This document shows, one piece after another, positions 18,225 through 28,215 of a stretch of DNA of 54,621 nucleotides. The position numbers were made by a program, and so were the translations under genes. Origin of the DNA: Cyanophora paradoxa CCMP329 (lineage: Eukaryota; Plantae; Glaucophyta); the NCBI GenBank assembly GCA_004431415.1, contig QPMI01000303.1, forward strand, positions 1 through 54,621, read 5' to 3'. Below the pieces are notes generated by a model, which searched no databases, was not told the DNA's origin, and was given only the letters and a program-made list of their open reading frames with translations. Each line of letters starts with the position of its first letter. Position 1 is the first letter of the stretch.

Positions 18225-21200
18225 CTAAGAGGGTGCCCTCCACAAGGCCGGGACGGCGCCGGGGCGGGGCGGGCCGGGGCGGGGCACCTGGAGGACGCCG
18301 GCGGCGACGAGCTTCTGGATGCGCGCCACGATCGTCGGGTCCCGCATGTAGCTCTGCGCCGCCTTCGGGTCCTGCGCCCCCGCACCGTGCCCCGTCGGAG
18401 GCAGGGGGGGGGGGGGGAAGGGTTGGAGGGGAAGGGGTACCGTCTTCATGTTCTCGAGGATGGTCTGCATCATGGGGTCCGAGAGGATGGACTGCGGGGG
18501 GCGGGGCGTGAGCACGGGTACGGGACCGAGGGGAGGGATACGGGGCGGGGTACCTGGATCTCGGGGTCGGCCATGGCCTTGGCGAGGCGCTCCTTGTCGC
18601 CCTGCGTCTCGTTCATCGCCCGCACCTGCGAGAGACGCCGGCGGGAGACGTCAGCGCCCCCGCCCGGCGCCCCTCATCCGCCCCTCATCCGCCCCCACGC
18701 CCCCCGCCCCCGGCGCGCCGTCTGCATGATGCCGTCCTTGATCTCCTCGTTCTCGGGGTCCAGCTCCAGCGCCTGCGCGCGCCCCCGCCCCCGTCGGCGC
18801 CAGCAGCGCGGGGCCGCCCCGCGGGGCCCTGGGAGGCGCGCGCGGGCGCACGTGCTGGTAGGCCTCGAGGGCCTTGTGGTACTCCTTCCCGTAGTAGAGG
18901 ATCCCCGCCCTCCGCACCAGCGCCTTCCCTGCGCCCCACGCCTCGGCCTCGGCGGGGCGGGGCGGGGCGGGGCGGGGGCGGGCGGACCGAACTTGGGGTC
19001 GAGCTTGAGGGCCTCGTCGCAGTCCTGCGGGGCGGGGGCGGGGCGCGTGAGGGGCCCGCGGGGGAGCGGCGGGGAGGGAGGGGGCGGGGCGCACGCGCTC
19101 GGCGAGCTTGAACTCGCCCAGCTTGCAGTAGGCCGAGGCGCGGTTTGAGTAGAAGACCGGCTCCTGCGCCCCGCCCCCGCCTCAGCGCGGCCGGGGCGGG
19201 GGCCCGGCCGGCCCGGCGCGCCTTGGGGTTGCGGCGGATGGCCTCCGTGTAGGCCTTGACGGCGCCTGCGGGGCGGGGGCGGGCCCGCCCGTCAGCTCCG
19301 TGGACTCTGCGGGGGGGGACGGGGAGGCCTCGCACCGGGGTAGTCGGCGGCCTTGAAGAGGGCGTTGCCCTTCTCCTTCTCCTCCTGGGCCTTGGCGGGG
19401 TCCAGGTACGCCTCCTCGTCCCGCTTCTGCTTAATCCTCTTCACCTGCGCGCCGGCGAGCCCGCTCGGACCGCGGCCCTCGGGGCGCCGCCTGCGGGCGC
19501 GCCTCCTGGAGCTTCTTGTAGACGTCGTCGGCCTTGTGCTCGCTCAGGCTCTTCTCGTAGTACTTGATCGCCTGCGCGCCCCGGCCCTCAGCACCGGGCC
19601 GGGGCGGGGCCGGCGGGGGAGCGCGCGCGCCTCCTCGAGGTTGTCCTGCTTCTGCCGCGCGGTCCCGATGCGCGCCAGCGCCCTGCCGCCCCCCAGCGCG
19701 TCAGCCCGCAGAAGCGACCGCCGAGCAGAGGAGGGCGGGGCGGGGCGGGGCGCGCTTGGCGATGTTCTTGAAGTCGGCGCGGTGGGAGCGGCCGACGTCG
19801 ACGGCCGTCAGGCAGTCCGCCACGCACGCCTCGTAGTTCCCTGCCGCCGGCGTGAGGCGAGGCGCCGCTGGGGGAGGCGCGCGCGCGCCGAGCACCGGTC
19901 TCGAAGTGGACGGCGGCGCGGTTGGTGAGGAAGGACATCTCCGCGTCGTCCAGCTCGATCGCCTGCGCCCCGCACGCACCCCCGCTCGGCTCCCTGTCTT
20001 CCCTTCGCTCTTCTGGGGCGGGGGCGGGGACCTTGGAGTAGTGGGCGAGGGCCTCCTCGAAGCGCCGCGCCTTGTACGCCGCGTTCCCCTTCTCCTTCTC
20101 CTCCAGCGCCTCCTTCTTCTTCGGGTCCACCGGCTGCCCGGCCCCGTGAGACGCGAAGGCGCTGCTCAGCCGCGCGCCGGCGCCGGCGCCGGCCGCACCG
20201 CCTCGGGCTCCTTCTTCTCGGGGGCGCGCGGCTTGGGCGGCGAGGCGTGCCGCGGCGGCGGCGCCGGCGCCTCCTCCTCCATCGCCTGCGCGCGGCCGGT
20301 CGTCGGTGGAGCGCGGGCGGGGCGCGGGGCGGCGGGGCGCGCACGTCGAAGTTGCCGCTCGGGTCGGCCGTCGTCACCTGCGCGCAGCGGAGGCGCGCGT
20401 GGGCCCCGGCGCGGAGTCCCTGAACGCAGGGGGAGGGGAGGGCGTTCTCACCTTGACGCCCATGAGGGAGCTGAGGAGCTGGAGGATGCGGGGGTCCTGC
20501 AGGTGCCTGCGCCCCGGCCCGCCCCTCGGCGCCGGCCCCTCGAGGCCGGGGCGCGGGGCCGGCCGCTCACGCACTTGCCGAGGTTCTTGGGGTCGCGCTG
20601 CAGGTCCTCCACGGCCGCCCGGAAGGACGGGTCCGCCAGGTGCTTCGCCAGCTGCGGGTTCGCCGCGATCTGGGGGGAGGGGGTACGTCAGCGTGCGCTC
20701 GTTCCGGGGTGCGGGGTACCGCACCTTGCCGAAGAGGTCGCCCTGGAACATGTTCGCGAAGGTGGCGCCCTGCGGGGTGCGCCGCGCGGCTCGCTCGGGG
20801 GTACGGCGGGAGCCGGGGCGCGGCGGGGGGTACGGCGCGCGCCATGTCGGTGCCCCCCATAAGAGCGTCCTCGGCTTCCTGGAGGCCCTCCTGGAGCTGG
20901 GCGTTCTGCGCGGGGGGTACGGTTCTCGCCCGGCCCTCGCTCGCGGGGGGGTACACGGCGCGGCGCACGCTCGGGTCGTGCTTCAGGCCCTCCTTGTACG
21001 CCTTCACGGCGTCCTGCGGGGTCCGGGCGTGTCAGCGGGACGGCGCGCCGGGCGCCGGGCGCTGCCCGTGCCTTGTATTCGCCGAGCTGCGAACGACATG
21101 CGTCAGCGGCGCGGCGGCGCGGCGCGTGCAGATTTCGCTGTTCATACCTTGTAGTGAGCGAGGCCCTTGCGCGAGTAACCCTGCGGGGCGGCCGCGGCCG

Positions 21201-21745
21201 GTCAGCGGGCTGCCGAAGCCTTGCGCGCGGTTGGACGCGAGGTGCCGCGCGCGTCGAACCTTCGCCCAGTCCGGCTTGATGGAGCAGCACTTCTCCGCAT
21301 CGCCCAGAGCCTCCTTGAACTTGTTGAGGCCGGCGTAGGCCGCCGACCGGTTGCTGCCGAACATTCGATCCGGGTCGCGCGGCGGGCGCGGGCGACGGCG
21401 GCGGTGGGGCGTGCCTGTAGAGGACGTGGTTGCTCGGGTCGTGCTGGATCGCCTCGCTGAAGTGCTGCACGGCCTCGTCGAAGCGCTGCGCCGAGAAGGC
21501 CTGCCCCCAGCGCGTCAGCGCTCCGTCGGACTGCGGCCGCGGCGTACGGCGCACCTCATTGCCCTTGGCCTTGGCTGCGTTCGCCTGCGCGCGCGTATGA
21601 GGGGCAGGGCCGGCGGGGCGGGAGGCGATGGGCGAATGGAGCCAGCAGCGCGGCCCAGGCGCGTGCGCCACGCATCTAGCGTCCCGGCGCGCTGCAGCTA
21701 AAGGAATCAGTTTCGAAGCGGTCGCACCAGATCGACGTTTGTCAT
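18225..21745 (-). CDS. STI1: Hsp70-Hsp90 organizing protein STI1/HOP (TPR1-DP1-TPR2A-TPR2B-DP2), ~27 introns; last exon uncertain
   Basis: MTNVDL|ANAAKAKGNEAF...HVLYSNRSAAYA; ALEEKEKGNAAYKARRFEEALAHY; AQEEKEKGNALFK; AMADPEIQSILSDPMMQTIL; RIQKLVAAGVL. Confidence 0.96.
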
Positions 21746-21768
21746 CGCGGATGGACGCTTGTCGGGAT

Positions 21769-21788
21769 GGAAGCTGCCAGAATGTTCA
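21769..21788. promoter_or_regulatory. Putative heat-shock element upstream of STI1
   Basis: gGAAg-cTGCc-aGAAt-gTTCa is three of four alternating nGAAn units in register, ~25 nt from the ATG of a known HSF target gene. Confidence 0.5.
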
Positions 21789-21950
21789 GTGGGTTCAGCG
21801 GGTGCTGGTGCTCGCGTCGCGCTGTTCCGCGAATCAGCAGAGGAGGCGGGCCGCGCGGCGGGCGTGCGTGGCGGTCACCCTGAGAAGCGTCGCGAACAGG
21901 ACAAATGCAAATGAGGAAGGGACCGCGCGGAGAGTCGAACCCCCGTCCGC

Positions 21951-21955
21951 AAAAA
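21951..21955 (-). terminator. Pol III oligo-T terminator of tRNA-Gly
   Basis: TTTTT on the minus strand, 16 nt downstream of the tRNA 3' end. Confidence 0.8.
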
Positions 21956-21971
21956 GGACTGGCAGCAAGAG

Positions 21972-22043
21972 TGCACTCGCCGGGACTCGAACCCGGGCCC
22001 CACGCGTGGGAGGCGTGGATCTTAACCCCTCGACCACGAGTGC
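21972..22043 (-). tRNA. trnG-CCC: tRNA-Gly(CCC)
   Basis: Full cloverleaf: GCACTCG/CGAGTGC acceptor stem, CACGC-CTCCCAC-GCGTG anticodon arm, CCGGG-TTCGAGT-CCCGG T arm, discriminator A. Confidence 0.97.
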
Positions 22044-22068
22044 AGATGGCGAAATTCCCGCTTTTTAC

Positions 22069-22084
22069 CCGGCCTGGTTCGAAT
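22069..22084 (-). promoter_or_regulatory. Conserved tRNA upstream element ATTCGAACCAGGCCGG (-41 to -26)
   Basis: Identical 16-mer at the identical offset upstream of tRNA-Leu (25137-25152). Confidence 0.75.
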
Positions 22085-22133
22085 AACGCAGAGGTCGTTC
22101 GGGGAGAGAGCGGCGTGGTCGTGGTCCAGGGCC

Positions 22134-22882
22134 ATGGCGCGCCGCGGCGCCGCCTCGGCCGCCCGCAAGGTCCTCTACATGCGCGAGTACCGCACCACGG
22201 AGCGCGGCCTCGAGCTCTCGCGGGCGCGCCACGCGGCGTTCAAGCGCGACGCCCGCGCCGTCCTCCGCAAGGCGCTCTACCTCGCGCGCTACCGCCGCAG
22301 GCCGCAGGTGGTCGCGAAGGTCGTTCGGCGCGCGGAGCGCCGCGCGCTGCAGCGGCTCGCGAGGGGCGGGCCGCAGGCCCGCGCGCCGGCCTCCACGCGC
22401 CGCTCTCGGCTTCACGCAGGGCCCCGTCCCGCGCGGCGACATCCTCGTCATCGGCCTCGACGTCGTCGTTCTGTTCGAGGGCGACGAGCACGAGCACGGC
22501 GAGTTGAACGTGTTCTACTGGACGGGGTGCGCCTCCGCTCGTCACTCGCGCACATCTGACTGTGCGCAGAAACTACGTTCCCTGGGTCGAGAAGGAGCGC
22601 CTGCTGAAGATCGCCCTCGACGTCGCCCGTTGGCTCCACCTGCCGCTCCACGTCGTCAGGCCCGCCTTCTCGCGCTCTCGCGCCTTCTCGCCTCACGCCT
22701 TCTCGCCGCGCAGGCTCAACCTCCACAGCAGGCGGCGGTGGACGGACATGGAGCGGGCGCTGAACGCCATGGAGGCCGCCCTGCGCCTCCCCGCCGAGCA
22801 GGCCCCGCAGGCGGGCCAGCCCCGCGTGCAGTACTTCGGCTACTCGCGGGCCCGCCTTGACGCCCTCGCCTCCGCCACCCGC

Positions 22883-22915
<33 letters not shown>

Positions 22916-23044
22916 CTCGAGCCCCTCCCCGACCCCCTCGGCCCCTACGAGGAGCTGCCGGCCTGGCTCCAGCTCGAGGTCGACGCAGCCCGCGCCCTCC
23001 CCGGCTACGACACCTGCCGCCTCCAGCTGCAGCGCGAGCTCTAG
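22134..23044 (+). CDS. Hypothetical protein with Arg-rich YMREYR N-terminus
   Basis: ATG at 22134. Introns at 22377-22419 (GC-AG), ~22527-22569 (GT-AG) and a probable third in-frame GC-AG intron give one continuous frame to TAG 23044, including a (PE)n repeat. Confidence 0.7.
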
Positions 23045-23185
23045 CTCTAGTTGCCTTGTTTTTCCCTCGAGTGGTGAGCAACGTGGTTCGTGTCGTGAGG
23101 GATGTCGTGCTCGAGGGGAGGTCGTTCGGGGGGGGGAGACCGAAGGGGGGTGTTGCCAAGTTGGCGAAGCGAGAAGGCCCCCGAC

Positions 23186-23530
23186 ATGCCCCGCTCCCCA
23201 GAGTCCGTCCAGCGCAACGTCGAGTACATGCGGCGCTACCGCAGCACGCCGCGCGCCCTCGCGCTCGTCGTCGTGTATACGTGCCGCGCCAAGCCCGGCA
23301 CGCTGGCGAAGGTCGCCGAGCGCGCGGAGCGCGCGGCGCTGCGCAGGCTCGTGAACCTCGCGCGTGGCGGCCCTCGGGCGTCCCCGAGCCGCTCCCGCGC
23401 GCTCTTCGCGCACCACATGTACAGGATCCGGCTCGACGACGCGTGGCGCATGCCGGACCCCGGGCCCGCCCGCGGCCCTCCGGGGGCTGAGGGGGAGCCT
23501 CTTCGAGGCTGGGCCGCAAGCGGGGTTTGA
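23186..23530 (+). CDS. Short tandem paralog or pseudogene of the 22134 gene
   Basis: YMRRYRST...LAKVAERAERAALRRLVNLARGGP matches YMREYRTT...VAKVVRRAERRALQRLARGGP. The two genes share the upstream 14-mer GAGGTCGTTCGGGG. Confidence 0.55.
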   Translation: MPRSPESVQRNVEYMRRYRSTPRALALVVVYTCRAKPGTLAKVAERAERAALRRLVNLARGGPRASPSRSRALFAHHMYRIRLDDAWRMPDPGPARGPPGAEGEPLRGWAASGV

Positions 23531-24053
23531 ATTCGAACCCTCTCCTTACGTTTAAATTCGAACCCTCTCCGGATTCTCACCCCCCACCCTGGCACCCTCC
23601 CCTCCCGCCCAGAGCTTCCCCCAAGTTCCTCCCGGGTCCCTGCGTACTCCGGCCAGGCCTTCTTCGGATCCCGCCCCAGCGGGCCTCCCGCTCCCCTCGC
23701 CCAGGCCTCCACGACCCCCCCCCCCCCCCCCCCCCAACGAAACCGGCGGCGGAGACGGCGACCTGGCCTTTGACCCCTTGAAAGAATTCGGATATACCTG
23801 CCTGCCTGCTCATCGTGAATGTGCAGAAAGAAAAGCGGATAGGAGAAGCATGAAACAACCGCAAAAGCCTTCGCGATTAGAAGGCGTAGTTGAAAAAGTA
23901 CAGCTAGAATAGTAGTTTGTAAACGGTTAGCGACGGCCCGGCTGGGAACGCGCTCAGCTCGCCGGCTCGGCAACGGCGTCGGCGGCCGGGGACGGGCTCT
24001 CTCTCGACCCGCCTTCCTCCGCATCCCCCGCGTCCCTGCGGGCCGCCGCGCAG

Positions 24054-25005
24054 TCAGCGACCGGATTCGAAGGCAGGAAACTCCACACGAAGAGAAGAAG
24101 CGCACTCCGAGTCGCTGTCCACATCTGCGGCGACGGTGGCCCACGAGAGCTGCGCGGGCGCGAGTGAGCGAGCGAGCGCCCTTGAACTTCCCGAGGGGGG
24201 GCTGCACCTTCGTCATCGCGACGCCGAGCGGCTGCGCCTCGACGATCTCCTGGCAGGTCCGCGCGTGCTCCGGCCAGTCCCGCCGCTGGCACTCCCGGTC
24301 GCAGTAGCCCTGCCCGCACCGGCACTCCGCCTTGCACCGCTTTCCGCATGCGCCGCAGATCCGGCCAGCGCGCCCCTGTTGCCGCAGATGCGTCCGCTCC
24401 GCGCCGGCCGACTTTCGCTCGATAACCGCGCCGTTAGGGCCGCCGCGCACGATCTCCTCGAACGTGTGGCAGTCCTGCTTCCGCGCCCGCTTGTCCCACA
24501 GCACGAAGCCCGCCCGCGAGAAGAGCTTGACGTGCGTCTTGAAGGGAAGCCGCGCGGTGGGCCCGCCGGGGATCGCGCGGTACGCTTCCGCGAGCTCCTC
24601 CCACGACTGCGGACGCGAGGCTCGCGGCGTGAGCCACGAGCGCTGCCGGTCGCGCAGCAAGCCTAGGGGCTCGCCACGCACTCTGTCAGAGAGTCGCTGC
24701 TCGATGAGAAGCTCGGCCGCAAGCCCTCCCGCGGCGATGAACCGATCGGGAAGGCCGATGGCTGCGATGAAGCGCTGCGGGCCAGGAGGCGGGAAGCGCA
24801 GCCATGGCGGAGGTGCTGGATACAGTTCCGGCAGCTCGCCCTGCGCCACCATGTCGGGCGGGAGAGGGAATCCGTCCTCCATGAGCTTTTCCAGGCGGTT
24901 CGCGAGGACCTTGGCATACATTAGGTCGAGCACGCCGGGTCGAACGACCACCGGCCGCCAGAGCGCCGGCCCCGGCACCCCAGAGCCGCTCGCGGCGGCC
25001 GCCAT
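24054..25005 (-). CDS. MYND-type zinc finger protein
   Basis: CGACGKRCKAECRCGQGYCDRECQRRDWPEHARTC fits the MYND pattern. A terminal GT-AG intron leads to TGA at 24054. Confidence 0.8.
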
Positions 25006-25136
25006 CGTCGAGGGCGGACGCTGGCGCCGAAGGCAACGAGTCGAACGAGCTCGCGGTCGAAGTCAAGACCGTCGGACTACGCGGCCTGCCAGCTGCCTGC
25101 ACGCTGCCTGCAACTTGTCTGCAAAGGTGTCCCCGA

Positions 25137-25152
25137 ATTCGAACCAGGCCGG
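25137..25152 (+). promoter_or_regulatory. Conserved tRNA upstream element ATTCGAACCAGGCCGG (-41 to -26)
   Basis: Identical to the element upstream of tRNA-Gly, with the same 25-nt spacer. Confidence 0.75.
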
Positions 25153-25177
25153 CTGGAAAACTGGCATTTTGGGGGCC

Positions 25178-25260
25178 GCAAGGTTGGCCGAGTGGTTAAG
25201 GCGCCTGACTTAAGTTCAGGTCTCCTCGCGGAGTCGTGGGTTCGAACCCCACACCTTGCA
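25178..25260 (+). tRNA. trnL-TAA: tRNA-Leu(TAA)
   Basis: GCAAGGT/ACCTTGC acceptor stem, CCTGA-CTTAAGT-TCAGG anticodon arm, long variable arm, GTGGG-TTCGAAC-CCCAC T arm, discriminator A. Confidence 0.97.
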
Positions 25261-25261
25261 A

Positions 25262-25453
25262 TTCCGGGAAACCGGCGCTGTCCAGCGGACCGGCCCGAGC
25301 GCGTCGCTGACTCGGCAGCCTCCGCCGGCCGCCCTCGGGAAGTGCACAAAGGCCGCCCGGGCGGGGAGTCGCCGACTCGCCGGTGACGCCGGTGAGGCGC
25401 CCGCGGCCGGTCAGCGCGGCGGACCGGCGGTGCCGTGGCCCGTGGGCCCGGAA
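25262..25453 (+). ncRNA. Candidate ~190-nt rod-like structured RNA abutting tRNA-Leu
   Basis: Nested helices TTCCGGG/CCCGGAA, GACCGGCC/GGCCGGTC, GCGTCGCTG/CGGTGACGC and TCGGC/GCCGA. No T4 terminator follows the tRNA. Confidence 0.4.
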
Positions 25454-25734
25454 ACATGCGCCTGCTCTGCAGGCTACAGCCTACAGCCTGCAGGTCAGCT
25501 GCTCCCATCGATTCTTTGGCCGGCGCGATGGGAGCATGTTGCACATTCAATTGCAATGTCCGCTTGAACGCAAAAGCGAGCTAGCTATAGCTAATGCATA
25601 TGCTGCAGCTGGAGCTAACTCAAGGCCTAGGCTGAGGGGCCGAGGGCCCTGGCACGGATCGCAATTCGACAATTAAATGTACAAGGACTTCATGACATCC
25701 ACAGGGCACTGCGGCAGCCCGCAGCTTGCCTCGA

Positions 25735-28215
25735 TCACTCCGCCTCCTCGCCGCCGCTGCTCCCGCCAGACCCGCCGGTGCCGCCCTTGGCCGCCCCGCC
25801 GAAGAGCTCCCAGTGCCGCTTGATCATCTGCACGGCGGCGCGGCTCTCAGAGTCATGCCTTGAAGGCCCCAGTCCAGAGGCGGGGCGGCTCACGGTCTGG
25901 TTCTTGATGACCTCCTGCTTGCAGAGGGACCGCACGGGGTCCACGCCTGCCGGACCCCGGGTACGGCGTTGGGGGGGGGGGGCGGGGGGGGGGGGGACGT
26001 GCTCTGGAGCCGGGGCACACACCTCGCTGGATGTGGTGGAGCCGCTTGAGGGCGGAGTGGACCTGCAGCGGGCCGCCGCGTCGGGGCACAGCGGGAGGGA
26101 GAGGGGGAGAGGGGGGAGGGGGGGAGGGGGGGGGGAGAGGGAGAGGGCGGGGGAGAGGGGAAGGAAAGAAGGGGGAGATAGGGTAAGTGGGGAGCTCGAG
26201 GAGGGGAAGATGGGTAGGGAGAATGGGGAGGGGAGTAGGGGAGGGGGAGTAGGGGAAAGGGGGTAGGTGTAGGGGAAGGGCGGGGGCGGGGGGGGGGGGG
26301 GGGGGGGGGGGAGGACCATTCGGGTGCAGGAGCCGGACTTGCACGAGCAGCCCGTCAGCACGACCTGCGCGCCCGGGATCGGGTCGCGTCGGCTCCGCCC
26401 AGACAGAAAGCGAAATTAAAGGGGCCGGGCGGGACTCGAACCGTGGCGCCGGAGGTGACGGTGCCGGAGGCGGGGTCGAGCTTGGTGGGGTCCTCGAGGG
26501 AGAGGCTTGGGGCCTGGCGGCCGCGGGCGGGCCCGTCAGCGCAGCCCGGGCTCTGCTTTGCTTCCGGGCGCACCGACGCGCCGCATAGCTCGTGGTACGG
26601 CTCCACCAGGTCGCGCTGCAGCCGCCTCAGCGGGGGGCGGGGGGCCGGCCGGCGGCGCAGCAGCAGCCCAGGCGGGGGCAGCTAAATTCTAAGCTTAGAG
26701 GACCGAGGCTGGGCACGGGATGGGAGGGTGCTGCGGCCGGACCTGGAAGTGGAGGCGCTTGGCGCGCTCGCGGGGCCGGGCCGGCGGGCGCTGCGCCCGG
26801 GGCCGCTTCGCCGCCGGGCCCGCCTCGCCGTCCGAGCCGCTGGCGCTCCCCTGCGCTCGAGCGGGTGGCCGGGGGCTCGTCTGGAGGGGGGCCGGGCGGC
26901 TCGCCTCCTCGCCCCGGGGCGGCCTGGAGCCGGGGGCGGCGTGGCGGGCCCGCGGGGGAAGCCGAGGACCGCGGAGGACGAGGAGGGCGGCGAGTGGGCG
27001 CTGGAGCTGGAGCTGGGGCCGGCGGCTGCGGGCCCCGCGCGCGGCCGGCGGAGCGGCCCCCGGCGCCAGCGCCGGCGCGCGGGGAGCTGCCCCCAGAGGC
27101 CGTCGCCTCCTCCTCCTCCAGGCGAACCGGACGATGCGGGGGCGGTCCGGGTCCCCTGCGCGCCCCGGGGGCATTGGGGCCGGCGGCTCGCATCAACGTC
27201 GAAGGAGGCGCGCACCGGCTCCTCCCGGTCCTCGGGCTCGCCCGCCGGGGCGCCCTCGGGCCCCGCGGGGTCCGCGGGGCGGCCGCCGCGGCCTCGGGCA
27301 GCTGCACCAGCGCCGCGACGCCGTCGAGGGGCACGTCGGCGCGGGGCCTGCCGCCCGCCCCGCGCCCTCAGCGGCGCCCCACGGGAAGAAGAGAGCTCGC
27401 GCACTTGCTGGGGAGGGCCACGCCGGCTCCGCCGCCGGCGGCGAGTCGGTTCCGCTCGAGGAGGCGTCACGCGGGTCCGCGCTCCCCGCCCGCGGCCGCG
27501 CCGCCTGCGGGCCGCCCGGCTTGGGCTTCGGCCTCGCCTGCGGGCGGCGCCGCGGCGACCCGGCCGCCTTCCCCGCCCCGCCGGCCGCCCTCGCCGCCGC
27601 CGCCGCCTGCGGCGAGCGCTTGCGCGGCGACGAGGAGGCCGGGGCGCGCCTTGCCGGCGAGACGCGCCCGGCGGCCGTCGCCGCGCGCTTGCGGGGCGAG
27701 GTAGCGGCGGTTGGTGGCGCCGGGCGCTTCCCCGGTGATGCAGAGGCGGGGGCGGAGGCGGCGGATCCGGAGCGCTTGCGCGGGGAGGCTGCCGCAGCCG
27801 GCGCCGCCGGCACCGGCCGCTTCCGAGTCGACGAGGACGCAGCCGCCGCCGCTGGCCCGTCCGTTCCTTTCAGGGCGATCGCCTGCGCGGCGGCGTGAGC
27901 GGAGGCGGCGGCCAGCGGGGCCGGGGCGCGTGCGGCTGCATCGACCGGCGCTGCTGCCTTCCGAGGCGACCTGCGGGCCTCTGCAGAGCCGCCGGCTGAC
28001 GTGGCCGGCGGCGCTCTCACCGCCTGCGCGCGCGTCAGTCGGCGCCGGCGCCGCCGTCGAGAAAGGGCTCGAGAGCGGCGATGATCGCGCCTGCACCGCG
28101 GCATCGGACTTCGCGGCATCCGACGAAGACGCGCCGGAGTCCAACCCCTGCCCAGCGATCAGCTGTCTGAACAAATCGGATCCGGAGCGCAATTCGGCGT
28201 ACGGACCTTCGGCAT
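25735..28215 (-). CDS. Hypothetical protein with Ala/Pro/basic SPRK-rich low-complexity region and a small Cys-containing C-terminal domain
   Basis: MPK|GLDSGASS...; repeated SPRKR/SPGKR motifs; short terminal exons VVLTGCSCKSGSCTRM|VHSALKRLHHIQRG|VDPVRSLCKQEVIKNQT|MIKRHWELF with canonical introns; TGA at 25735. Confidence 0.65.
26093..26313. repeat. Intronic polypurine/poly-G low-complexity tract
   Basis: About 220 nt almost entirely G/A on the plus strand. Confidence 0.85.

Follow-up and report, generated by a model that had tools for sequence, protein, structure and literature searches.

This study concerns a 16-nucleotide (nt) sequence, ATTCGAACCAGGCCGG (hereafter the 16-mer), that lies upstream of two tRNA genes of Cyanophora paradoxa CCMP329, on contig QPMI01000303.1 of assembly GCA_004431415.1; the whole 54,621-nt contig was analysed and is referred to below as the window. 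By ARAGORN and Rfam the window has two tRNA genes, those of tRNA-Gly(CCC) and tRNA-Leu(TAA), and the 16-mer stands upstream of both (2/2). Each gene retains a canonical A box and a canonical B box inside it, and both B boxes pass the minimal consensus GTTCRANNC (PMC5391098). To place transcripts we used Logan contigs from three RNA-type runs and one DNA run, aligned to positions 21400-26000. The features at the two loci are as follows.

21971-22043 (lower coordinate 21971/2 by ARAGORN/Rfam), minus strand: tRNA-Gly(CCC); ARAGORN, and Rfam RF00005 at 57.7 bits
22044-22068, minus strand: spacer 1, 25 nt, with A/T patches at -24 (TAAAAA) and -13 (AATTT)
22069-22084, minus strand: 16-mer copy 1, exact match, at -41 to -26 of tRNA-Gly(CCC)
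22082-22318, plus strand: 5' part of the gene A mRNA, ATG at 22134; RNA contigs starting at 22082 (X17), 22087 (X19) and 22110 (X15)
23764-25135, minus strand: mRNA of the MYND zinc-finger gene, ATG at 25005, spliced, with CT..AC introns; RNA contigs
~23764/23820-24034, 24105-24149, 24208-24606 and 24682-25135, minus strand: exons of the MYND gene; RNA contigs
25137-25152, plus strand: 16-mer copy 2, exact match, at -41 to -26 of tRNA-Leu(TAA)
25153-25177, plus strand: spacer 2, 25 nt, with A/T patches at -21 (AAAA) and -12 (ATTTT)
25178-25260, plus strand: tRNA-Leu(TAA); ARAGORN, and Rfam at 62 bits

The 16-mer and its spacers

The 16-mer occurs at exactly two sites in the window, and a search tolerating up to three mismatches found no third site there. 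Both copies occupy the same interval, -41 to -26, each separated from the tRNA +1 position by exactly 25 nt. At the composition of the window (72% G+C), the probability of finding the same 16-mer by chance at one given offset is 2.6e-10, and we therefore do not attribute the identity and the shared offset to chance. The block has two dissimilar halves: its outer 8 nt are enriched in A+T (5/8, against 28% for the window), its inner half is G+C-rich, and all 16 positions are identical between the copies.

The adjoining spacers are also alike, with 13 of 25 positions identical over their full length (P ~0.005 for composition-matched 25-mers drawn from the window). An earlier note on this DNA, made from the sequence, had reported 12/19 identity for part of the spacers, which a recount confirms; its coordinates for the two copies, the -41 to -26 offsets and the 25-nt spacing are likewise all correct by exact matching and by the tRNA calls. 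Across the 41 aligned upstream columns, all 12 mismatches fall within the spacer (P = 6.6e-4). The 16-mer is thus more constrained than the DNA adjoining it, whatever its origin. Beyond -41 the identity drops to background, at 2-4 matches per 10 columns. Three A/T patches recur at matching places in both modules, near -42, -22 and -12, and neither a TATA sequence nor a CAA triplet was found within -50 to -1 of either tRNA gene.

Two further lines of evidence bear on which neighbour the 16-mer belongs to. No other promoter in the window carries it. Gene B, gene A's tandem paralogue, stands without a tRNA partner. It shares a block of the 5' untranslated region (5'UTR) with gene A, and the motif was not found upstream of it; its absence there despite the common 5'UTR block ties the motif to the tRNA gene and not to the gene A family. 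The identical 25-nt distance to +1 and the similarity of the spacers tie it to the tRNA genes as well. Judged from its sequence, then, the 16-mer is a real, constrained element coupled to tRNA genes, in this case two neighbouring ones, and the proposal in the earlier note of a sequence-specific block at a fixed distance from two unrelated tRNA genes is supported, with the addition that the block appears to be selectively maintained.

The gap between tRNA and mRNA

At both loci a protein-coding gene points away from the tRNA gene, and its RNA contigs end at the 16-mer. Contigs of the MYND gene have their 5' ends at 25135 (X15) and 25134 (X17), 2-3 nt from the motif edge at 25137, and the three gene A contig starts compare with a motif outer edge at 22084. 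The gaps left between tRNA +1 and the mRNA contig ends are 25136-25177 and approximately 22044-22081, and no RNA contig covers 25136-25177 in the runs aligned. The sharp stop of sequence similarity at -42 coincides, at both loci, with the start of the unrelated 5'UTRs of the head-to-head genes. Contig ends cannot prove 5' ends, but at each locus they agree between two independent runs, and they do not follow depth. Taken from these ends, the opposed starts at both loci are separated by less than 1 kb and enclose no gene, as in a divergent promoter, and the module from -41 to -1 is the entire untranscribed gap of a divergent tRNA/mRNA promoter, a feature newly described here.

At both loci the outer edge of the motif is where a divergent RNA polymerase (Pol) II mRNA begins, and a reading of the element in terms of Pol III alone is therefore not tenable. 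The earlier note had proposed a novel Pol III upstream element; what stands of this is a block in the zone of TFIIIB and its TATA-binding protein (TBP), with no TATA, and what it missed are the divergent Pol II starts.

For the MYND gene itself, the zf-MYND match is weak and below the Pfam cut-off, a query at the level of its exons recovered as its only database relative the EukProt model P0001, tig00001286_g8025.t1, and its read-through open reading frame (ORF), used as a database query, gave no match.

A proposed shared promoter gap and its alternatives

The reading that we favour, tentatively and as slightly short of an even call, is that the 16-mer is a selectively maintained protein-binding site which, together with its spacer, forms a complete 41-43-bp promoter gap between head-to-head tRNA and mRNA genes. 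What is observed is that the copies are identical and equally offset, that the block is more tightly constrained than the spacer, and where the RNA contigs end. The binding of a protein to the block, the assignment of a polymerase to it and the position of the Pol III start are predicted. From the tRNA side, the block would span approximately 20-35 bp upstream of the expected Pol III start, where TFIIIC would place the TBP-containing TFIIIB; its A/T-richer outer half, ATTCGAAC, may substitute for a TATA-like box, and the G+C-rich inner half, CAGGCCGG, may provide extra sequence-specific contacts. From the mRNA side, the same bound complex, or its edge, would set the Pol II start of the divergent mRNA, and the tRNA-adjacent A/T patch (AATTT or ATTTT), approximately 30 bp upstream of the mRNA start, is a candidate TATA-like box for the mRNA.

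If this reading is true, the approximately 41-bp gap would be an unusually compact use of the same DNA by Pol III and Pol II, and it would make it simple to test how complexes that contain TBP settle on a polymerase and a direction. A block of 16 bp, half of it G+C-rich, that is kept identical at a fixed distance would also suggest that this early-branching algal lineage has an additional sequence-reading contact or factor. Upstream of tRNA genes, TFIIIB is usually said to be placed with no sequence specificity, or with no more than a preference for A+T-rich DNA. Were it a local oddity of two genes, it would be of little wider interest.

Several points weigh against the shared promoter gap. 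The logos published for the upstream regions of C. paradoxa tRNA genes come with no mention of this motif (PMC3531208). There are just two instances, 3 kb apart and inverted, for which local copying is a possible origin. Two copies of the motif's core, at 23531 and 23556, have no adjoining tRNA gene or RNA contig. The mRNA 5' ends are taken from contigs and not from mapping, and the Pol III start position is likewise unmapped. Finally, a Pol II initiation complex and TFIIIB would need to share the same ~40 bp.

Type 3 Pol III promoters, such as those of U6 and vertebrate tRNA-Sec genes, lie wholly upstream of the gene, with a proximal sequence element at about -55 and a TATA box. The module resembles them in having a sequence-specific element wholly upstream of a Pol III gene, but it differs in that the A and B boxes inside the genes are kept, TATA is lacking and the block sits at the TATA position rather than near -55. 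TATA-like or A+T-rich upstream elements of tRNA genes in flowering plants, Schizosaccharomyces pombe and yeast lie at about -25 to -40, in the TFIIIB/TBP zone, and boost Pol III initiation (PMC3531208, PMC13578239). The block occupies this same zone in both genes; unlike these elements, which feature TATA or an A+T-rich run together with CAA triplets at -10 to -1, it has no TATA and no CAA within 50 nt and is half G+C-rich, and with 16/16 identical positions it is far more specific than an A+T-rich patch. TFIIIB normally takes its place directly upstream of the tRNA start with no evident sequence preference, and human TBP crosslinks about 21 bp upstream of tRNA starts (PMC4750860). In yeast, Pol III complexes bound to DNA influence where transcription of neighbouring Pol II genes starts (PMC4228148). 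The yeast tRNA genes and extra-TFIIIC (ETC) sites are comparable to the present loci in that tRNA and Pol II genes stand head to head and the mRNA starts at the expected edge of the Pol III factor footprint; the yeast effect, however, is positional and involves no common motif, whereas here a gap of ~41-43 bp contains a shared block.

Alternatively, the 16-mer might serve Pol II only, as a start-site-proximal core element or a co-regulator site of gene A and the MYND gene, with the tRNA genes merely adjoining. The mRNA contig ends that abut the motif at both loci are as this would have it, and so are two copies of its 9-nt core, ATTCGAACC, that are additional to the 16-mers and lie in the same 3-kb gene cluster without a tRNA gene. 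In all, this core occurs four times in the window (0.12 expected), in all four cases between the two tRNA genes. A Pol II element gives no reason for the identical 25-nt distance to tRNA +1, nor for the similar spacers, and the motif is absent from gene B and from every other promoter in the window; we consider this explanation unlikely. Shared ancestry without special function, in which the segment from -41 to +23 (64 nt, 72% identity) was copied by inverted duplication or gene conversion, is in our view somewhat less likely again. A repeat search returns the two segments as one inverted repeat (22021-22084 against 25137-25200), the genes are just 3 kb apart, and the DNA run shows additional copies of the tRNA-Gly/gene A segment itself. 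Copying does not account well for divergence as uneven as 16/16 identical positions in the block against 13/25 in the spacer (P = 6.6e-4); a conversion tract of 16 nt would be unusually short, and the tRNA bodies belong to different classes.

Two further explanations have the motif itself belong to a known class of element. Read on the mRNA strand, it could be an inverted B box forming an ETC-like site, a boundary at which TFIIIC would set the Pol III unit apart from the Pol II unit; an inverted TFIIIC site had been suggested in the earlier note. ETC sites are reported in several eukaryotes (PMC11724288), the mRNA-strand GGTTCGAAT matches the B-box core at 9/9 positions, and two of the four core copies in 3 kb lie away from any tRNA gene, which recalls the solo B-box copies at ETC sites. 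In 4/4 copies, however, GGTTCGAAT is followed by A or T in place of the conserved final C (C61) of GTTCRANNC, which both real tRNA genes have. A full type 2 promoter would have an A box 30-60 bp upstream on the same strand, and there is no such partner (TRGYNNARNNG within 75 nt upstream: 0/4 core copies). TFIIIC bound to the motif would also intrude on the TFIIIB zone of the real gene. We regard an ETC-like site as improbable, and the suggestion of an inverted TFIIIC site is not borne out. The copies could also mark the two ends of a mobile element of 3.08 kb, as its terminal inverted repeats, or of one whose insertion sites lie at a fixed distance upstream of tRNA genes, and they do make up a perfect inverted repeat of 16 bp whose arms are separated by 3,052 nt. 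Fixed-distance targeting of this kind is known from TRE5-A in Dictyostelium, which inserts 47 +/- 3 bp upstream of tRNA genes (PMC5391098). For insertions of the TRE5-A or Ty3 type, shared sequence is expected beyond the insertion point, away from the tRNA gene, whereas here identity is at background beyond -41, in unrelated 5'UTRs; the similarity extends toward the tRNA gene and not into the supposed element. No direct target-site duplication is present, the flanks being alike in inverted and not in direct orientation, and the additional copy of 21970-22258 in the genome runs across the end of the supposed element. A Pfam scan of three ORFs between the arms gave no transposase or reverse transcriptase domain, returning a weak zf-MYND match, one weak and spurious-looking match, or nothing. 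A mobile element is accordingly the explanation to which we give least credence, and a very slight one.

Generality and neighbouring features

A broader version of the shared promoter gap would hold that in glaucophyte tRNA genes, or a sizeable subset of them, a sequence-specific, partly G+C-rich element replaces the TATA-like box, and that a single complex on the ~41-bp module both drives Pol III and sets the divergent Pol II start. This would amount to a Pol III/Pol II core promoter with a dedicated recognition sequence, and we think it doubtful. The PlantRNA paper presents upstream logos of C. paradoxa nuclear tRNA genes, in which TATA and CAA are much rarer than in flowering plants (PMC3531208), and later surveys describe algal tRNA upstream regions as weakly A+T-enriched. 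A universal 16-mer at a fixed offset would hardly go unnoticed, which makes a genome-wide element unlikely. The motif is therefore probably not general across C. paradoxa tRNA genes, and its use by a subset of them is possible.

In metagenomes the 16-mer has at least 120 exact matches, and on neither strand do the matches listed have a tRNA in the 60 nt upstream or the 130 nt downstream of them; these matches are chance or bacterial occurrences and are uninformative on this lineage. We also considered whether the reverse strand of the 16-mer could be a bacterial tRNA T-arm, and rejected this, there being no tRNA near the metagenome matches listed. Viral contigs (IMG/VR) contain 73 matches, none with a tRNA and many with identical flanks, which suggests that they mostly represent one conserved phage gene unrelated to tRNA genes. 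In the full-text literature, the motif strings retrieved unrelated primers and probes and nothing else.

Three further features of the region concern the 3' sides of the tRNA genes and the two additional core copies.

21951-21955, minus strand: run of five T residues (T5), 15 nt past the 3' end of tRNA-Gly and likely its Pol III terminator, from reading of the sequence
23525-23570, plus strand: tandem 21-nt repeat, period 25, 95% identical, containing the 10-nt core AATTCGAACC twice
25261-25507, plus strand: tRNA-Leu trailer of ~250 nt, contiguous with tRNA-Leu in RNA contigs

From the T5 run at 21951-21955 it is at most ~50 nt downstream to the next minus-strand gene, whose non-coding first exon reaches at least 21903 and is followed by an intron at 21822-21878 (minus strand). 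With the T5 run so close to this first exon, tRNA-Gly is squeezed in between two regions of Pol II initiation that are separated by less than 200 nt.

Downstream of tRNA-Leu there is no run of four or more T residues, and the first T-rich site is TTCTTT at 25513-25518. RNA contigs from three runs cover tRNA-Leu together with its trailer; one of them begins exactly at tRNA +1 (25178), and these contigs are approximately 5 times deeper than the 3' part of the convergent right-hand gene. The contigs are strand-blind, and the RNA may be a 5'-processed, 3'-extended tRNA transcript. A rod-like hairpin following tRNA-Leu was rejected as a candidate, the sequence folding no better than shuffled sequence (z = -1.38). 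A relaxed Rfam search found no further Pol III-type RNA in 20500-27500, including downstream of the tandem core copies.

The tandem repeat at 23525-23570 is located where gene B has its stop codon, in the gap that separates convergent genes. Gene A (22134-22559) and gene B (23186-23530) have 39% amino-acid identity over ~80 residues, and their products are small arginine-rich proteins with no Pfam match. In the DNA run (X2), the contig spanning 21970-22258, which holds tRNA-Gly, its module and the start of gene A, has a depth of 79 compared with ~46-51 in the flanks. It carries GC>CA at 22202-22203 and continues through junctions from 22258 to 23114 and from 22258 to sequence outside the window, which suggests that the tRNA-Gly/gene A unit has an extra copy or a divergent allele. 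This extra copy or allele is the version best covered by RNA contigs. Elsewhere in the region, a 21-nt poly-C run at 23715-23735 and a G-rich low-complexity tract of ~380 nt at 25959-26335 attract very deep contig matches of low identity.

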